Origin: Pavona decussata
Lineage: Eukaryota
Length of the DNA: 64,000 nucleotides
NCBI GenBank assembly: GCA_977016875.1
Contig: CDRNST010000141.1
Coordinates: forward strand, 806,001 to 870,000
Direction of reading: 5' to 3'
In this document: piece after piece, positions 9,895 to 25,930 of the stretch
How positions within the stretch are numbered: the first letter of the stretch is position 1
Layout of the letters: each line of letters begins with the position of its first letter
The notes under the pieces: model-generated
Told to the model about the DNA's origin: nothing
What the model saw: only the letters and a program-made list of their open reading frames with translations
Databases searched by the model: none
Program-made: the position numbers and the translations under genes

Positions 9895-10156
9895 GTGAAA
9901 TTCAAATTAAGATCTGTTTCAGCCCAGGTGAGCTAGGAGCTGATTCAATCACTCCTAGGGCCACTTAGGTGACAATTTGAGGCAAAATGGCGCTATCAAA
10001 GAACATTTAAGCCCACTCTGGGACTTGTTTTAGCCCTTAGGGGTATTTCAGCCCTTGAGATGAAGCTATTGTGACACTAATTTCCAAGTTAGCACTTTAT
10101 TTTACTTACCGAATCGCTCAATTTTGGGGCTAAAACAGATCTCTTGAATTTACATG
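9895..10156. mobile_element. MITE with terminal inverted repeats
   Basis: gtgaaattcaaattaagatctgtttcagccc ... ggggctaaaacagatctcttgaatttaca are imperfect inverted copies. Confidence 0.6.
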
Positions 10157-18255: not shown

Positions 18256-21200
18256 TTAAACTATTGTACAGATCAAACTACGACCACAGTCACAGCTTTT
18301 GAACTTAAAATCTTCCAATTGTAAACCCTTCTTATTTTCATGTTCCTGACGTAACCGAGCCAAGTTGTCTTGAACGGTGGCAACAAATGGATGCTCAGTA
18401 CCATGCTCTTTTATCAAAATAGTCAACGCGCGTTCAAAATACTCCTTCGACTGCTCCAGGTCTCCTTGGTCACGGAGTACAGTACCCAAGTTGTTAAACG
18501 AAGTAGCAACATGAACATGTTGAGGTCCCAGCTGCTCTAATTGAATGGCCAGGGCACGCTCATAATACTCCTTCGCCTGTTCAAGGTCACCTTGGTCACG
18601 GAGTACTTTGGCCAAGTTGTTATAAGAAGTGGCGACATTAACATGATGTGATCCTGACTGCTGTAGGCGAATAGCCAGGGCACGCTGATGATACTCCTTC
18701 GCCTGCTCCAGGTATCCTTGGTGACGGAGTACAGTAGCCAAGTTGCCATAAGAACTGGCCACGTCAACATGTTGAGGTCCCAACTTTTCAAGTCGAATGG
18801 CCAGAGCACGCTCATAATACTCCTTCGCCTGCTTCACGTCACCTTGTTCACGGAGTACAGTAGCCAAGTTGTCATACGAAGTGGCGACATTAACATGTTG
18901 AGTTCCCAGCTGCTGTAGTCGAATGACCAAGGCACGCTCATAATGTTCCTTTGCGTGCTTCAGGTCACCTTGGAGACGGAGTACAGTAGCCAAGTTACCA
19001 TAACAACTAGCGACGTCAACATGTTGAGATCCCAACCTTTGTAGCCGAATGGCCAGGGCGCACTCATGATACTCCTTCGCCTTCTCCAGGTCACCTTGTT
19101 CACGGAGTACAGTAGCCAAGTTGCCATAAGAAGTGGCGACATTAACGTGTCGGGGTCCCAGCTGCTGTAGTCGAATGGCCAGGGCACGCTCATGATACTC
19201 CTTCGCTTGCTCCAGGTCACCTTGGTCACTGAATACAGTAGCCAAGTTGTTGTAAGAAGTGGCGACGTTAACATGTCGAGGTCCCAACTGCTGTAGTCGA
19301 ATGGCCAGAGCATGTTCATGATACTCCTTCGCCTGCTCCAGGTGTCCTTGGTGACGGAGCACAATAGCCAAGTTGCCATAAGAACTGGCGACGTCAGCAT
19401 GTTGAGATCCCAACTTTTGTAGTCGAATGGCCAGAGCGCGCTCATGATACTCCTTCGCCTGCTCCAGGTCACCTTGGTGACGGAGTACAATAGCCAAGTT
19501 ACCATAAGAACTGGCGACGTCAACATGTTGAGGTCCCAATTTTTTTAGTCGAATGGCCAGGGCACGCTCATGATACGCCTTCGCCTGTTCCAGGTCACCT
19601 TGGTCACGGAGTGCAGTAGCGAAGTTATTAAAAGAAATGGCGACATTAACATTTCGAGTTCCTAGCTGCTGTAGTCGAATGGCAAGGGCACGCTCATGAC
19701 ACTCCTTCGCCTGCTCCAGGTCTCCTTTGTGCCGGAGTACAGTAGCTAAGTTGCCATAAGAACTGGCGACGTCAACATGTTGAGGTCCCAACTCTTGAAG
19801 TCGAATGGCCAGGGCACGCTCGTGATACTCCTTCGCCTGCTCGAGGTCTCCTTGGTGACGGAGTACATTAGCCAAGTTGCCATACGAACTGGCGACGTCA
19901 ACATGTTGAGGTCCCAACTCTTGAAGTCGAATGGCCAGGGAACGTTCAAGATACTCCTTCGCCTGCTCCAGGTCACCTTGGTCACTGAGAACAGAAGCCA
20001 AGTTGTTATAAGAACTGGCGACATCAACATGGTGAGGTCCCAGCTGCTGTAAACGGATGGCCAAGGCACGCTCACGATACTTCTTTGCCTGCTCCAGGTC
20101 ACACTGGTCACGGAGTACAGTAGCCAAGTTGCTACAAGAAGTGGCGACACTAACATGTTGAGGTCCCAGCATTTTTAGTTGAATATCCAGGGAGCGCTCA
20201 TGATACTGTTGGGCAAGGTGAAACTCACCCAGTTCATGATGAACATTGCCAAGTAAGTAGTTGGCTATTAAGGCATCTTCTTCTATAACGACGCCATCAT
20301 GCTGTATTAATTTTAACGCTACATTCAAGAACACTTTTGCAGTGTTAAACTCGCAATGACTAAAACATATCTTGCTAAACCTTATGAAATAATTTGGATA
20401 GTTTCTTATATCCAACGTAAAGTTTTCAACGACTTGGACTATGTCGTCTCTGTTGAAAGTAGCTTGAAATTTTGTACTTAAGAACTTTAAATGAGGAACC
20501 ACATGCCTGCTGTTAATAACACAATCCAAGTTATCTATGCACTGATAAAATGATGTAATGACCCCGAGATCGATTTTGAAATTTACACCCACCGAATAGT
20601 TTTTAGTTTCAGATTTGATCACATCATGCACACCCTGATGTACGCGAATGTAGACATCACCATCATCCTCTTCAAATAGCAGCAGTTGGCCTCTTTGAAT
20701 CTGCATTCGAATGGTATTGTCATCCTTTAAGTCGTCATCTACATTCAGTATGTAGTTTATCACAATTTCAAGGTTTAATGGTTGTTGTGAACAGAGCGAA
20801 AGAAAAGTGAATGTGTGATTCATAACTTTGTCTGAGGACATCGCATTTTTCACGGCTAATGTAGTGGCTGCGGTCATGGATTTTGGATAGCCTCGATTTG
20901 TCTCAGTAAGAAGAGTCTCAGTTCCAGCGCACTGACCTTTCTTTAGTTTTTCCAGGTAGTCTTTCCATCCATAATTTGAAGAGGCTTTGTTCTCACAAAC
21001 TTGTTTAACAAATGTGGCAGCACTTGCCAGGGCAAGAGGTTGATAGTCTAATGTCTGTGCGACCTCCTCTTCCACCTCAGTGTCAGTGATACCAGAAAGC
21101 CTGGATAATAAGGAAGTGGCATCAGCAAGCTCCATACCTTTGCTCACTGAGATGTGACTGATGAGAGAGTTTTTTAAGGGGATGGAGGTAGTGTCCTGTG

Positions 21201-22335
21201 TTGTGATCAGCATTTGCCCTCCTAACCACTGCTCGTTCCCAGATTCTGGCAAATGAACACTTACTTGAGGTATGCTGATAACATTGTCAACTATCAGTAG
21301 CCATGAGGTGAAGAGCTCAACTTTTTTGCTAACTAACGCCTTGAGATTGGCGATCTTTTCCCCTATCTCTGAATCCTTAGAACTAAGGGTGTCTGTAATT
21401 GCATATTCTGAACACTTCAACAGTCGAGCAAAAGAGACAAACGATTCTAGCAGTGAGTCAAGACTTTCAGCATTAAGAGTCATTACAAATGAGGTGTTTG
21501 CGGCTTCTTGGAAAAATCTGTTTGCGACGAGTCCGGCCAACTGAGATTTGCCACTGCCAGGATTCCCTGAGATGTACAGGTAACTTAAGCAGCTTTTGTT
21601 GCCTTCTTTAAGTTCCTTTAGCTGTTGGGTTATTTTAGTCACCTCATCATCTCGACCGGCAACGTCGTGTGAAGGCTTGGGAGGGAGAATGCAAAATGGA
21701 GAAACTTCAATCCGAACTGGCTGATCTTCAAGGACCTGTCTTTCATCTTCTTCTTCTTGAGGTTCTGCTACTTTCTCTTGGAGTTCCTGATAGAGGTCTT
21801 CAACGATTTTCAAGATCTTTGCTAACTCCTCCGTTTGAAAACTTCTCCGGTTTCTGATTTCTTCAATACTTAAGGTGGAGAGCCCGAGTTCTTGAAATGA
21901 AAACTCAACCTTAGTTATGGCACTGTGAAACGCTGGGTTTGAAAGATGGCCTCGTGGTATGTGAGGAAATTCTTCATTACGAAATTTCCTGAGATCATCT
22001 ACATTGGACTTGACGACTGCGTTAAGACTGTTGCCGATACAATCCGAGTACAAAATGGCATAAAAAAGCACGGTGCAATCCCACTCAGCTCGATTTCCAT
22101 TTATCATGGTAGCGAAAAGTTTTGCACCTCGTCTTTTACTACTTGGAGACTCCCCGTTATAGAAGTCCAGCCCATTCCTCGGCTCGTCCTTCCATCCCCC
22201 CAATGTAGCCTTGTAGCGGTTGTCCCATTCCTGTTTGAAGATTGTTCGTAGACTCTCGGCTAGTACATCCGTGGTGATACAGCAAATCCTGAAGTAGTTC
22301 AGTTGTTGATCGCTGAATTTTGTTGCAGCGGCCAT
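18256..22335 (-). CDS. NLR-like STAND protein: HEPN (DZIP3-like) - coiled coil - NB-ARC-type P-loop NTPase - 15 x 42-aa TPR - CaaX; 1359 aa, single coding exon
   Basis: Uninterrupted ORF; first ATG (MAAATKF) at 22335 just after a ttttatag acceptor (~22360); RNEEFPH (Rx5H); Walker A GNPGSGKS; Walker B WLLIVDNV; MLITTQ; YQPLAL (GLPL equivalent); RVHQ (MHD equivalent); kinesin-light-chain-type repeats; ends in CTIV*. Confidence 0.93.
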   Translation of the reverse strand: MAAATKFSDQQLNYFRICCITTDVLAESLRTIFKQEWDNRYKATLGGWKDEPRNGLDFYNGESPSSKRRGAKLFATMINGNRAEWDCTVLFYAILYSDCIGNSLNAVVKSNVDDLRKFRNEEFPHIPRGHLSNPAFHSAITKVEFSFQELGLSTLSIEEIRNRRSFQTEELAKILKIVEDLYQELQEKVAEPQEEEDERQVLEDQPVRIEVSPFCILPPKPSHDVAGRDDEVTKITQQLKELKEGNKSCLSYLYISGNPGSGKSQLAGLVANRFFQEAANTSFVMTLNAESLDSLLESFVSFARLLKCSEYAITDTLSSKDSEIGEKIANLKALVSKKVELFTSWLLIVDNVISIPQVSVHLPESGNEQWLGGQMLITTQDTTSIPLKNSLISHISVSKGMELADATSLLSRLSGITDTEVEEEVAQTLDYQPLALASAATFVKQVCENKASSNYGWKDYLEKLKKGQCAGTETLLTETNRGYPKSMTAATTLAVKNAMSSDKVMNHTFTFLSLCSQQPLNLEIVINYILNVDDDLKDDNTIRMQIQRGQLLLFEEDDGDVYIRVHQGVHDVIKSETKNYSVGVNFKIDLGVITSFYQCIDNLDCVINSRHVVPHLKFLSTKFQATFNRDDIVQVVENFTLDIRNYPNYFIRFSKICFSHCEFNTAKVFLNVALKLIQHDGVVIEEDALIANYLLGNVHHELGEFHLAQQYHERSLDIQLKMLGPQHVSVATSCSNLATVLRDQCDLEQAKKYRERALAIRLQQLGPHHVDVASSYNNLASVLSDQGDLEQAKEYLERSLAIRLQELGPQHVDVASSYGNLANVLRHQGDLEQAKEYHERALAIRLQELGPQHVDVASSYGNLATVLRHKGDLEQAKECHERALAIRLQQLGTRNVNVAISFNNFATALRDQGDLEQAKAYHERALAIRLKKLGPQHVDVASSYGNLAIVLRHQGDLEQAKEYHERALAIRLQKLGSQHADVASSYGNLAIVLRHQGHLEQAKEYHEHALAIRLQQLGPRHVNVATSYNNLATVFSDQGDLEQAKEYHERALAIRLQQLGPRHVNVATSYGNLATVLREQGDLEKAKEYHECALAIRLQRLGSQHVDVASCYGNLATVLRLQGDLKHAKEHYERALVIRLQQLGTQHVNVATSYDNLATVLREQGDVKQAKEYYERALAIRLEKLGPQHVDVASSYGNLATVLRHQGYLEQAKEYHQRALAIRLQQSGSHHVNVATSYNNLAKVLRDQGDLEQAKEYYERALAIQLEQLGPQHVHVATSFNNLGTVLRDQGDLEQSKEYFERALTILIKEHGTEHPFVATVQDNLARLRQEHENKKGLQLEDFKFKSCDCGRSLICTIV
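18345..20260 (-). repeat. 126-bp coding tandem repeat (15 TPR units)
   Basis: Recurrent SYxNLAxVLRxQGDLEQAKEYHERALAIRLQxLGPQHVxVA; DNA motif tactccttcgcctgctccaggtc recurs every 126 bp. Confidence 0.95.
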
Positions 22336-24747
22336 ATTCACCTTGTGTGACTGCAAGTTCTATAAAAATTAATAATCTGCTGTTAGCAAAACCGTGGTGG
22401 AATCTGGGTGGCCTGTTTCAGGTTCTAACGCCCCGTCCACACATGAATCTTCTCATTTGTAAAGGGAAATATTTTGTGTGTGGCCTGTGTAAATAAAAGT
22501 TTTTGTAAACGCTGACGTTACAGCATCTGATCCAGTTTGCAAACAGGAGAAAGTATCGGATATGGCAAATGATCTACGCGTGCTCAATTCAAGGGCTCAG
22601 AGTTTCTTGGGGACGGGTGAAATCTAATGTAAACTATCGCGGTATATGTGTCAATGGATTATAATTATGCAGTGGCGAAAGTAAACGCATACGCCTGAAC
22701 CGGGTTTAAGATGACGGAAACACACAATAGTGGCAGGCTTCCGTTTTCCCGGGAACACTCGACAGGTAAAACACTGAAAGTTCTGCTCGAGAGAGAGGAA
22801 GTTCTAGAAAGCCATGAGTAAGTTGCTCTGAGCAAGGGAAATAAGTAACTGTAGTAGAAAGCGTGAGATTTAAGATAACAAGAGTCTTTTTAATTCGATA
22901 TAGATCCCATCTACTGGGTAAGGCGACTGACGTGCTTCGGCCAGCGAATTACAAACATTGAATTCCCTTTTAACCATTTATTTTAAAACCCTGGAGTAAG
23001 GTTCACAAGCAATCACTTTGTGCTACTTTAACAAAGAAGGACGTAAGTGATAATATCTAGGGAGGCTTGCGAGCGAGTCTCGTGAACCTGTACAACGTTC
23101 GACGCCTGATCCAATAGTGCGCCTTCTGTTTACACAGAAGGTGAACCATGGGTGAAAACAAAAGGATCTTTACAACTTTTAAAACTACTTTAGTACTGTA
23201 TCTGGTTTATCTAACATTCAGATAATACTTCATTTCATTTGCCCACTAGAGCCGGTATTCCTTATGGCAATTGTTGGGGCAGATTGGTCCCCACTACAAT
23301 TGAAGATTCGTTTTAAACATTTGCTGTAAGGCTGTTTTTTCTTTGTGACAATAGGATTGTTTTAATGCTCTGCTTGTCGGCGCACGTGGAATTTGCGAAG
23401 GCGGGTGTAGGGAGTGAGTGGACAGCTCACTTCCTCCATGGCCAGAAGGCTGAATTTCAAGGGCGGTTTGATTTCACTCCACACAATCAAAACGATTCAC
23501 AAAAATAGGTCTTCATTTCACACAGTATTCAAATTACAGGGTAAGCCATTTTTCTTTCTCAAACCCGAGTGGACAAAAGGTAATTGAACTGTGGAGTTAT
23601 CTTACATGTGATAATTTCTGGTTGGTGACTTTGCATAAAAAGTTAGAAAGCGCTCTATTATGTGCACTAAAATTAAATATTCTTTTGTCTACTATAAAGT
23701 AGCCATACTAGCCTCGTTCAAGGTAAACTGATATTCTTTTGATTTTTGACTTCAAGAACGAGGTTTCGGTAGGTTGGGGTTTTCAGGTTCAATTTTTTAA
23801 TAGCCACATTAAATTGACCTACGACTCATCCGGAAATTTTTAAAGCTACAATAATATGGAGTCTAATTATAGTGTAGATTACTCCACAGAGAACAACTTA
23901 AACGACATATTTATTCCATAACACCTACTAAAGGTCAATAACAAGTAAATGAAAATTTGCTACTTTCAAGTGTCGGAACTGAGGTAAACAATCCAAACTA
24001 CCAGTTGACTTTGAGGGATTTAAAGTATTGACATGATCGACTAGAACCTATGCAAATGAAACGCTTTGTTGCTTGAAAAGAAATAAAAGGCGAAGTAAAA
24101 TTGCTGTTGTGGCTGTCAAATTAGGGTTTTTCTACTGTTTCCCAACTAAGGAATTCTATCGAATGGGCTGATTGGCTTAACAGGCGCTTCAAAATCAGTT
24201 GCAGCCAGGGAAAAGTCCAGGCTGTAGTCCACAATCAATTTTACAAAAACCCCTCGCACTCTGCGTCAGTAGACGTCTTCGTGTCGTTAAGTTCCGCACC
24301 ACTAATTTCTAACTGTTTTTTAGGTTGTTGTTTTCGAGAAACCCGAATATTCAGTGATGAATTGAAACATACTTAGAACATATGCATCGCATGTTAATTT
24401 AACACGTTGTTTTACCATCACAAATAAGAGGTAAAATACAAACAGCAACTGATGATGCCCTACACTTGAGCTTCATTTGAATGGTAATGAGCTACTCACA
24501 TTAGATAGGATTTCATTCACACACTTCGAAGTTTAACTGAACCATGGCCAAATTTCATGGCTCGGTCCAACTGTACTATCGCCAAGTACTCTACAGAAGC
24601 CGACATCAAATCAATGGAAATAGTCCTTTTTTGGCCCCATGCATCAAAATGGATATAACAAGTGCAATTTTGTAACTTTGCAGAATTTTGCAAGTTTGCA
24701 TGGCATTCACGAAAGAGAATCCAAAGTCAGTAATAAAGAATACTCAC

Positions 24748-24840
24748 CCTTTGCTGTGGTTCCAACTTATTTCCGAGTAAACTAAATCAGCAGGCGGCAG
24801 TTATCAATATTGTACAAAAGAAAAATCTCTTTGAATTTCA
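24748..24840 (-). other. Putative non-coding first exon of the STAND-TPR gene
   Basis: Strong donor AGG|GTGAGTA at 24748/24747; homologous to the first exons of the peptide genes; the nearest downstream large coding exon is the STAND ORF. Confidence 0.55.
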
Positions 24841-24876
24841 ACTTCAAGACATGACGTGTTTGTCTATTTTCAGCAT

Positions 24877-25123
24877 AGTTAATTGAAGGACTGGTTATGA
24901 AACCTTGGTGCTGCCATTTATGTTGTCAGGTCCGCGAGTGTGCACAATCCTTTGTTTGATGTTTACACCTCAGTATCTTAACGACCCTCAACAGGAACGT
25001 TTCTATTGGTCAGTCGCTCGAACACACTATTGTGGTTTGTGCACGGTAAAGGCCAAAAATGCGAACAAAAACGTTTAACAAAGAAGTTTGTCAGGTTTCA
25101 TAACCATTGCTTTCATTAACTAT
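24877..25123. mobile_element. MITE with ~30-bp TIRs
   Basis: atagttaattgaaggactggttatgaaacct / aggtttcataaccattgctttcattaactat. Confidence 0.65.
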
Positions 25124-25627
25124 GATTTTCAGCCATCGCGGGTCCAGATCACGCGATTTTTATCTCGACCTGTCAACACTTCCCTGCGACAACATTTGAA
25201 TGCAATATTGCATGAAACTCCGCGTGATAGTTTGAAAGCCAAATTTCATTAAGAGTTCCATGAAGTGTGAAAATCGTATAATTTAGAAACTTTATTATTG
25301 TGCTTAAGTCTCGCGATTACTAACATGTTCACGTGATAGATGGCATGACGTTCGTTTTCTGACTGCATAAAGTACGAAAATGGCGATGTCTCTCACAACT
25401 TGGGAGACAACTTCAACTTGATGTTTCTTGTCACGCTCCCTGCACATTTCTCAGTTGAATGCATTCAGTCATCAACTTTATGCAACATAGTTACTGAATT
25501 TAGCGTTTGGGAAAACACTTTTCCAAGTTGAGTGCACCCAGGCAAAATCTTTATCCAAATTATGGTTATCACAATGGGGAGAAAAGGACCTGAAACGTTA
25601 CTAACATCAGTCTCACATTTATCACGT

Positions 25628-25930
25628 NNNNNNNNNNNNNNNNNNNNNNNNNNNNNNNNNNNNNNNNNNNNNNNNNNNNNNNNNNNNNNNNNNNNNNNNN
25701 NNNNNNNNNNNNNNNNNNNNNNNNNNNNNNNNNNNNNNNNNNNNNNNNNNNNNNNNNNNNNNNNNNNNNNNNNNNNNNNNNNNNNNNNNNNNNNNNNNNN
25801 NNNNNNNNNNNNNNNNNNNNNNNNNNNNNNNNNNNNNNNNNNNNNNNNNNNNNNNNNNNNNNNNNNNNNNNNNNNNNNNNNNNNNNNNNNNNNNNNNNNN
25901 NNNNNNNNNNNNNNNNNNNNNNNNNNNNNN
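25628..25930. other. Assembly gap (N run)
   Basis: Run of N. Confidence 1.

Follow-up and report, generated by a model that had tools for sequence, protein, structure and literature searches.

Proteins in which an N-terminal HEPN domain is followed by a central STAND NTPase and C-terminal repeats have already been described from cnidarians and molluscs, as reported in the available portions of a HEPN survey (PMC3710099) and of coral and mollusc genome papers (PMC8260672, PMC10236652, PMC9646362). According to the available text of the survey, an RNase function of such proteins has been predicted in print since 2013 (Anantharaman et al., PMC3710099). The stony-coral (Scleractinia) gene analyzed here belongs, judged by its sequence, to this large and already described, lineage-expanded family of NLR-like STAND receptors. 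Since the prediction dates to 2013 and the genome papers list the family, we regard the locus as another member and not as a new idea.

The gene lies on the minus strand of a 64,000-nucleotide stretch of Pavona decussata DNA, hereafter called the window (GenBank assembly GCA_977016875.1, contig CDRNST010000141.1, positions 806,001 to 870,000), in whose coordinates all positions are given. It comprises an uninterrupted, single-exon open reading frame of 1359 codons at 18256-22335 with its stop codon at 18256-18258; the translation was checked. Read mechanically, the frame extends over 18256-22356 (minus strand), the real start being the ATG at 22335. The sequence upstream of it (22336-22361) holds a 24-nt 5' UTR (22359-22336) and an AG splice acceptor (22361-22360), and the in-frame TAG upstream of the ATG is the splice acceptor itself. 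We also considered upstream coding exons, but paralogs and homologs from other corals keep the ATG and the residues following it as their start, which makes an extended N-terminus unlikely. An ENA-predicted protein (P0003) is 99% identical to the window protein and likewise 1359 residues long. In its overall layout, the protein consists of a HEPN head, a helical linker, an NB-ARC switch, about 14 TPR units and a cysteine-rich tail with a CaaX-like box. Purifying selection acts on the gene, and a pseudogene was rejected because of the intact frame, dN/dS values of 0.2-0.4 and coverage by RNA libraries.

The RNA evidence consists of contigs alone, from which neither strand nor expression level is readable. 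The stretch 20300-22359 is covered by contigs from four runs, two of them metatranscriptomes and two probable RNA runs. One contig, from a probable RNA run, ends exactly at 22359, at the AG acceptor, and none of the four runs has a contig lying in 22388-23605. The coverage follows an exon-only pattern; among the contigs of the four runs, none was found that connects the coding exon by a splice joint with an exon further upstream. Given their divergence of 1-4% from the window, the contigs may originate from alleles or from sister taxa. The window gene is probably transcribed.

The N-terminal domain (aa 8-165, 21841-22314, minus strand) is helical, about 160 residues long and, by sequence comparison, a divergent HEPN domain of the DZIP3/hRUL138-like type. 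An earlier, sequence-only reading had placed a HEPN effector fused to a STAND NTPase in the span 21500-22335, which corresponds to aa 1-279 and includes HEPN domain, linker and P-loop. The two strings it quoted are present, WDCTVLFYAIL at aa 85-95 (22051-22083) and VDDLRKFRNEEFPH at aa 112-125 (21961-22002), the latter ending in the putative catalytic motif R119-N120-E-E-F-P-H125 (Rx5H, 21961-21981, minus strand). The regular expression Rx4-6H has three matches within the first 700 residues of the protein, and a bare match is insignificant; the copy at aa 119-125 is meaningful because it is conserved, for which reason we also rejected a chance occurrence of Rx5H. R119 is kept in 122, N120 in 123 and H125 in 122 of 124 homologous coral domains, whereas in 32 paralogs from the same genome R119 and N120 are invariant and H125 is kept in at least 90%. 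These counts do not refute the HEPN assignment, which had been made to depend beforehand on the conservation of R and H among homologs. No other positions of the domain are as conserved as these three, and its median dN/dS is 0.22 versus 0.36 for the NB-ARC module. One peculiarity of the window copy is Pro124 directly before His125, at a position where 119 of the 124 homologs have alanine.

In profile comparisons, none of the Pfam HEPN models matched the window domain itself at E ≤ 0.01; HEPN_Swt1 came closest, at E 0.16. At the same threshold, the domains of its paralogs matched HEPN families alone, 21 of 32 matching PF18738; the Swt1-like model PF18731 was matched by 13 of the 32. Five of the ten close paralogs matched PF18738 with 17.7-23.9 bits, all under the Pfam gathering score of 27 bits, and the other five had no match; in the close paralogs, residues 106-165, the equivalent of the motif-bearing stretch, align to profile positions 75-136. 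The coral homologue P0002 has a second domain copy with the motif RNEEFAH; this copy and the window domain match each other at E 7e-63, and its score of 29.4 bits with PF18738 exceeds the cutoff. Since the window copy is unmatched while its paralogs and P0002 are matched, we assign it to PF18738 through these homologs and not by its own score. A Foldseek search of the PDB with the predicted HEPN structure gave no match at E ≤ 0.001, and the HEPN family sequence profile gave a single, spurious match of 23 residues against the PDB. On balance, the evidence favours a HEPN fold for the N-terminal domain.

The linker that follows (aa 166-212, 21700-21840, minus strand) is acidic and helical in sequence and predicted model. 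The coiled coil previously proposed here amounts to no more than a short helix that begins at aa 168 and extends to about 191, after which come Pro192 and a run of acidic residues; in model 1, the helix starting at 168 reaches the end of the model at 184. Linker length varies among paralogs, and distant paralogs have long heptad-like repeats in the same place. Directly before the NTPase, the paralog alignment reveals a conserved F-C-x-L-P-P-K-P-S-H motif (aa 214-223, 21667-21696, minus strand), in which F14, L17 and H23 do not vary and P21 hardly varies (numbering of alignment A2, 27 paralogs).

The NTPase module (aa 213-668, 20332-21699, minus strand), consisting of NBD, HD1, WHD and a helical extension, is of the NB-ARC type, with Apaf-1 as the best match both by fold and by profile. 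Its AF2 model (pLDDT 80) had Apaf-1 (3sfz) as the first Foldseek match (E 1.2e-11, probability 1.00), followed by CED-4 and the plant resistosomes NRC, ZAR1 and Sr35. Searches with the NTPase family profile against PDB sequences also had Apaf-1 first (E 5.8e-6), with the P-loop, TT(Q/R)D, (Q/S)PL and (V/L)H(Q/D) aligned in register. PF00931 was matched at E ≤ 0.01 by 19 of 27 paralogs (best 6.7e-8) and PF05729 (NACHT) was weakly touched by three of the 27. The window NTPase remains below the PF00931 gathering score (12 bits, E 0.12, versus 23.5 bits), and its region had no match in a phmmer search against the PDB. In profile scans of the window protein, NACHT was absent from the matches and no LRR model was matched, so that it is not an animal NLR in the strict sense of NACHT plus LRR.

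The NB-ARC motif set had been called complete, and all of its positions are indeed present, but several are non-canonical (TTQ, D-N, VHQ). The Walker A motif or P-loop, GNPGSGKS (aa 257-264, 21544-21567, minus strand), aligns to that of Apaf-1. Walker B reads LLIVDN (aa 346-351, 21283-21300, minus strand); among the paralogs, D350 is invariant and N351, which replaces the second acidic residue, almost so, whereas Apaf-1 has D-D. In LITTQD, an almost invariant Gln aligns to the sensor-1 Arg265 of Apaf-1. The GxP position is occupied by YQPLAL, with QPL aligned to SPL of Apaf-1, and the LHD/MHD position by RVHQ, with an invariant His and with Gln instead of Asp. Two of these deviations, the Gln at sensor 1 and the D-N of Walker B, suggest that hydrolysis is slow.

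The third part of the protein is an array of about 14-15 TPR units of 42 residues, of the kinesin-light-chain/NPHP3 type (aa 669-1330, 18346-20331, minus strand). It scores 518 bits with TPR_12, 451 bits with TPR_10 and 269 bits with TPR_NPHP3, and at the DNA level TRF reports a 126-nt unit repeated 14.0 times with 82% match at 18439-20207.

The array is followed by a cysteine-rich tail (aa 1331-1359, 18259-18345, minus strand) ending in a CaaX-like C-T-I-V (18259-18270), which is no textbook CaaX box because it has Thr at a1 and Val at X. A cysteine at position -4 occurs in 52 of 120 coral homologs, and its frequency differs between gene models with a post-TPR tail (46 of 79) and models that stop inside the array (3 of 33). 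It is found in half of 20 paralogs from the same genome, distant ones included, and the endings of homologs include CTIL, CQLL, CVLS and CAIS. That complete family members often end in a conserved CaaX box, a predicted prenylation signal, is a modest addition of the present analysis: the available portions of the published descriptions of HEPN-STAND proteins (PMC3710099, PMC8260672, PMC10236652, PMC9646362) contain no mention of such a tail that we could find, nor did we find, in the available literature, a paper linking CaaX with HEPN/NB-ARC proteins. The probable role of the tail is that of a membrane tether, and it offers a cheap and testable hypothesis on the place of the receptor in the cell.

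A search of the Pavona decussata genome with the HEPN domain gave 105 or more matches, mostly in tandem clusters, and 951 database proteins match at E ≤ 0.001. In precomputed domain lists, PF18738 is noted on one of 120 homologs and PF00931 on none, and several homologs carry the database name 'Nephrocystin-3'. Because the subclade of the window protein lies below the Pfam cutoffs for PF18738 and PF00931, surveys keyed to NACHT or NB-ARC would not count it, and it escapes NLR tallies made with Pfam or InterPro. This invisibility, as judged from profile scores, is the second modest addition of our analysis.

The HEPN-STAND-TPR domain reading is therefore backed by family profile matches, motif conservation, purifying selection and structure prediction. 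For the function of the window protein we infer, with the sequence-only reading, a ligand-triggered, oligomerisation-activated RNase in innate immunity. Taking Apaf-1, plant NLRs, bacterial Avs and the dimer-activated HEPN RNases RNase L, Ire1 and Csm6 as analogues, we find it reasonably likely that the protein is a coral NLR-like receptor, anchored by its CaaX tail, whose HEPN RNase head is switched on by assembly of the NB-ARC module after ligand sensing by the TPRs. At rest, the TPR array would keep the NB-ARC module closed, monomeric and ADP-bound; binding of a ligand to the variable TPR surface would open the switch, and nucleotide exchange would drive assembly into a ring or dimer. Assembly would bring together at least two single HEPN domains, whose paired R/N/H motifs could form a composite RNase site, and this site would cut cellular or invader RNA, leading to translation arrest or abortive cell death. 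With Gln for the sensor-1 Arg and a D-N Walker B, slow hydrolysis would mean that the switch stays on for long once loaded. If ligand-activated RNase function were established for any member of the family, animals would have their first NLR-like receptor with an enzymatic executioner of its own, and this would directly link animal innate immunity to the HEPN logic of bacterial Avs and CRISPR-type systems.

DZIP3 is an RNA-binding E3 ligase, and the HEPN head of the coral protein might itself be non-catalytic, acting in RNA binding or as a homotypic adaptor in a receptor that signals by recruiting other proteins. The unusual proline before the histidine of the window copy would fit this explanation, as would the matches of 13 of the 32 paralog domains to the Swt1-like model, given that the HEPN domain of Swt1 is inferred in the available text of the survey to be possibly inactive, having lost the conserved motif, and may bind RNA (PMC3710099). 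Further, in the available portions of the HEPN survey and the coral and mollusc genome papers we came across no DZIP3-like HEPN protein with reported RNase activity (PMC3710099, PMC10236652, PMC9646362, PMC8260672). However, the HEPN families judged inactive in the survey, as far as its available text goes, have lost Rx4-6H (PMC3710099), whereas 98-99% of the 124 coral domains retain R, N and H, with a dN/dS of 0.22; for an adaptor of purely structural function there would be no need of precisely this trio. We therefore consider a non-catalytic head rather unlikely.

Somewhat less likely still, in our view, is that the family has no role in pathogen defence and serves instead in some other self/non-self or housekeeping function, for instance in allorecognition, in the control of dinoflagellate symbionts or as an NPHP3-like scaffold. 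The name 'Nephrocystin-3' of several homologs and the TPR_NPHP3 score point in this direction, and NPHP3, like the coral protein, has a P-loop NTPase followed by TPRs of the kinesin-light-chain type. Yet the match to NPHP3_N is below the cutoff (19.7 versus 24.8), the fold of the NTPase is best matched by Apaf-1, CED-4 and plant NLRs, and NPHP3 is not known to have a HEPN head. NPHP3 is also a single gene, whereas the coral family is massively expanded; more than 100 tandem copies per genome with variable TPR arrays are the pattern of conflict genes and not of a single-copy ciliary scaffold. Very improbable, finally, is that the N-terminal bundle resembles the CC domain of a plant CNL resistosome, the oligomer inserting into a membrane to form a pore or channel.

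The reading of the protein as a receptor with an RNase head can be set against several known systems. With the published cnidarian and mollusc DZIP3-like HEPN-NACHT/NB-ARC proteins, as described in the available portions of the respective papers, it shares the N-terminal HEPN domain with R-N-x(4-5)-H, the central STAND module, the C-terminal repeats and the lineage-specific tandem expansion, and an RNase role is predicted for both; the subclade of the window protein has Rx5H, in contrast to the Rx4H more common in the published proteins. The NBD-HD1-WHD fold is common to the window protein, Apaf-1, CED-4 and plant NLRs, and its P-loop, TTxD, xPL and xHx are in register with Apaf-1. The coral protein differs from Apaf-1 by the Gln at the position of Arg265 and by VHQ instead of LHD/MHD, and from the whole group by having HEPN and not CARD, CC or TIR as its effector, and TPR and not WD40 or LRR as its sensor.

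The order effector-STAND-TPR is shared with bacterial Avs and with prokaryotic HEPN-STAND-TPR proteins, an example of the latter being Npun_F6454 (Table 1 in the available portion of PMC3710099), and the expected logic of Avs, in which ligand-induced oligomerisation activates an N-terminal nuclease, would be similar. PADLOC nevertheless found no match of the window protein to Avs or any other defence system; besides a generic TPR model, its output was confined to three hits that are weak and unrelated. As no Avs model of PADLOC-DB was matched, the NTPase is nearest to the eukaryotic Apaf-1 and the HEPN domain is of the animal DZIP3-like type, we rejected membership in the Avs family; the Avs-like layout that had been pointed out holds as a likeness in design.

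The antiviral system of OAS1 p46 and RNase L resembles the proposed mechanism in having a dimer-activated, HEPN-type RNase as executioner and a sensor that a C-terminal CaaX box directs to endomembranes (PMC8357416, PMC7612834). The coral protein has no 2-5A second messenger and its sensor parts are non-homologous, so that the two are analogous only. A more far-reaching and tentative idea, which we hold to be possible though doubtful, is that the database proteins, roughly 1000 in number, and the 100 or more copies of the genome represent a coral HEPN-NB-ARC-TPR clade which, labelled TPR or 'Nephrocystin-3' through Pfam thresholds and missed by surveys, would consist of single-chain membrane sensor-RNases, anchored by CaaX (with Ras-like upstream cysteines in some paralogs) at sites of RNA-virus replication or at the symbiosome. 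If true, this would make them a one-protein counterpart of the prenylated OAS1 p46/RNase L system, in which sensor, switch, RNase and anchor would share a single polypeptide.

The gene lies on the minus strand, where 18256-22356 forms one unbroken reading frame in the window; from the first ATG, at 22335, a single exon encodes a protein of 1359 residues, which joins an N-terminal HEPN domain, an NB-ARC-type NTPase and a TPR array, all conserved among its relatives. The nearest database protein, the ENA-predicted P0003, is 99% identical and likewise 1359 residues long, and the named relatives among the matches listed are all stony corals (Montipora, Porites, Stylophora, Oculina, Orbicella, Acropora), which places the genome in the Scleractinia. 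The sequence directly upstream of the ATG holds a polypyrimidine stretch and, at 22361-22360, an AG acceptor, which is itself part of the in-frame TAG bounding the mechanical ORF. Contigs from two coral metatranscriptomes and two probable RNA runs (96-99% identity) cover 20300-22359 piecewise, one of them stopping precisely where the exon begins behind the AG (22359), and none from these four runs falls within 22388-23605. Such a pattern is consistent with splicing of an intron in the 5' UTR; no joint to an upstream exon was recovered among the contigs, which show neither strand nor level. Farther upstream, at 24824-25171, contig word depth is near 10,000 in two metatranscriptomes, compared to 10-200 over the coding exon, with abundant loose contig ends at 24872-24907 and 25106-25115; the site may be a leader exon shared by the clade, or else a repeat. 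A run of N, either an assembly gap or a masked stretch, occupies ~25630-25930.

The sequence-only reading had placed a HEPN RNase-like effector fused to a STAND NTPase-TPR sensor at 21500-22335, a span of residues 1-279 that runs from the N-terminal domain over the linker and includes the P-loop. Both strings it quoted are present, WDCTVLFYAIL at residues 85-95 and the string with the Rx5H motif (R119-N120-x4-H125) at 112-125. On its own, the domain has no Pfam match at E<=0.01 (best weak match HEPN_Swt1, E 0.16); its assignment to HEPN rests on the family, which has at least 105 copies in the coral's own genome and occurs in 951 database proteins. We aligned 32 own-genome copies, 25-82% identical to the window copy. 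Scanned singly, 21 of the 32 matched HEPN_DZIP3 (PF18738) and 13 HEPN_Swt1, and the only two further families matched were also HEPN. Across the alignment R119 and N120 never vary and at least 90% of the copies keep H125, with the spacing R-N-x4-H (Rx5H) in the window's clade and R-N-x3-H (Rx4H) in more distant copies. Five of ten copies of the Rx5H clade matched PF18738, all below the 27-bit cutoff (18-24 bits) and all over profile positions 75-136, which contain the motif; a Porites lobata copy, whose motif is also Rx5H (RNEEFAH) and which matches the window domain with an E-value of 7e-63, reached 29.4 bits.

A bare Rx4-6H string is not meaningful by itself, because three occur within the first 700 residues. 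Conservation of the R and H among homologs, proposed earlier as a test, is nearly complete: in 124 domains from the best 120 coral homologs, each is kept in 122 and the N in 123, which together with the PF18738 matches supports the claim of a HEPN domain with an Rx5H motif. The median dN/dS against 21 paralogs is 0.22 in this domain and higher in both linker (0.35) and NTPase (0.36), and the AlphaFold2 model computed on the alignment is confident and all helical (pLDDT 89.7). In one close paralog (L017:1501-2055, contig C44) the motif histidine is replaced by glutamine (R-N-E-D-F-A-Q) within an otherwise intact ORF, so that its head may be naturally inactive.

The coiled coil that had been read after this domain amounts in the window copy to a short helix, from residue 168 to about 191, with Pro192 and an acidic run behind it. 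Distant paralogs have long heptad-like repeats in the equivalent place, and linker length therefore varies in the family; three of them on contig C46 (L052:1-1500, L061:1-1500, L064:1-1500) carry up to ~10 tandem seven-residue units of the type D-Q-T-K-S-D-L. Judged from these sequences, coiled-coil spacer length differs greatly across the family, with the window copy as the shortest form. Between linker and NB-ARC, an F-C-x-L-P-P-K-P-S-H motif (residues 214-223; 21667-21696, minus strand) has invariant F, L and H in 27 paralogs of only 31-81% overall identity, and could form the N-terminal strand of the domain that binds the nucleotide.

For the NTPase, the window sequence scores only 12 bits against Pfam NB-ARC (E 0.12, below cutoff), its best matches being sub-threshold AAA_16, NPHP3_N and nSTAND models. 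An alignment of residues 201-684 with 26 paralogs shows a well-conserved module, matched by NB-ARC in 19 of the 27 members at E<=0.01. Foldseek searches with its AlphaFold2 model (pLDDT 80) had Apaf-1 (E 1.2e-11), CED-4 and the plant NRC, ZAR1, Sr35 and Roq1 resistosomes as top matches, and the alignment profile, searched against PDB by sequence alone, also found Apaf-1 first (E 5.8e-6). In the latter comparison the P-loops are in register, as are Q-P-L with S-P-L of Apaf-1, V-H-Q, with invariant histidine, with L-H-D, and L-I-T-T-Q-D with L-L-T-T-R-D, so that a nearly invariant glutamine replaces sensor-1 Arg265 in the coral family. Walker B reads L-L-I-V-D-N, with invariant Asp and nearly invariant Asn, whereas NB-ARC proteins normally have D-D here. 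The complete NB-ARC motif set claimed earlier is thus right in kind, yet three hydrolysis-related positions deviate family-wide.

The TPR part, as claimed, matches TPR_12 very strongly, as it does TPR_10 and TPR_NPHP3, and consists of 14.0 copies of a 126-nt unit (18439-20207); long alternative-frame ORFs, such as 18960-19526 and 19746-20156, are by-products of this repeat. The array looks unstable from the paralog sequences: L068, L070, L073 and L077 stop prematurely within it and L074 shifts into an alternative TPR frame, with loss of what follows. This is a Cys-rich tail (18259-18300, minus strand) whose last four residues form a CaaX-like box, C-T-I-V. Of the 120 best coral homologs, 52 have cysteine at position -4 (CTIL, CQLL, CTVL and CVIL are among the endings); so do 46/79 gene models with a tail past the last TPR, against only 3/33 stopping inside the array, and, when the genome's own paralogs were read to the first stop, 10 of 20, distant ones included (survey loci L067, L069, L071, L072, L075, L078, L080, L081, L083, L085). 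One distant paralog ends in C-V-L-S with further upstream cysteines, Ras-like. This retention suggests a prenylated, membrane-anchored family; a literature search found no paper linking CaaX with HEPN/NB-ARC proteins.

Taken together, the protein is probably a receptor with a ligand-triggered, oligomerising, RNA-cutting HEPN domain. By analogy to Apaf-1, plant NLRs, bacterial Avs and dimer-activated HEPN RNases, the NB-ARC would open once a ligand binds the variable TPR array, nucleotide exchange would lead to oligomerisation, and single HEPN domains would pair into a composite R/N/H site that cuts RNA. Through its CaaX tail the receptor would sit on a membrane, and the sensor-1 Gln and Walker B D-N would slow hydrolysis and hence switching off. 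That the HEPN domain is instead a non-catalytic RNA-binding or adaptor module seems unlikely beside the near-universal R, N and H, and a non-defence role of the family slightly more so. A pore former like the plant CC domains is very improbable.

Compared to known systems, membership in Avs was rejected (no Avs match in PADLOC), as was a NACHT-LRR NLR (NACHT absent among the matches, no LRR model matched). The 2013 HEPN survey describes DZIP3/hRUL138-like HEPN fused to TPR, NACHT, Death and LRR, and expanded in Nematostella and oyster (PMC3710099). According to Emery et al., NACHT is combined with this HEPN more often than with any other partner in many cnidarians (PMC8260672). Noel et al. report DZIP3-like HEPN domains in large number at the N termini of coral NACHT/NB-ARC proteins, NB-ARC usually being joined to TPR (PMC10236652), and Takeuchi et al., who also counted Rx4-6H motifs, describe the same kind in a pearl oyster (PMC9646362). 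The architecture is thus of a known kind, to which this gene adds a member. Only one of the best 120 homologs has PF18738 in its precomputed Pfam list and none has PF00931, so this subclade escapes domain-keyed surveys; it is one of two additions made here. The other is the conserved CaaX tail, reminiscent of OAS1 p46, a prenylated sensor that acts upstream of RNase L (PMC8357416, PMC7612834).
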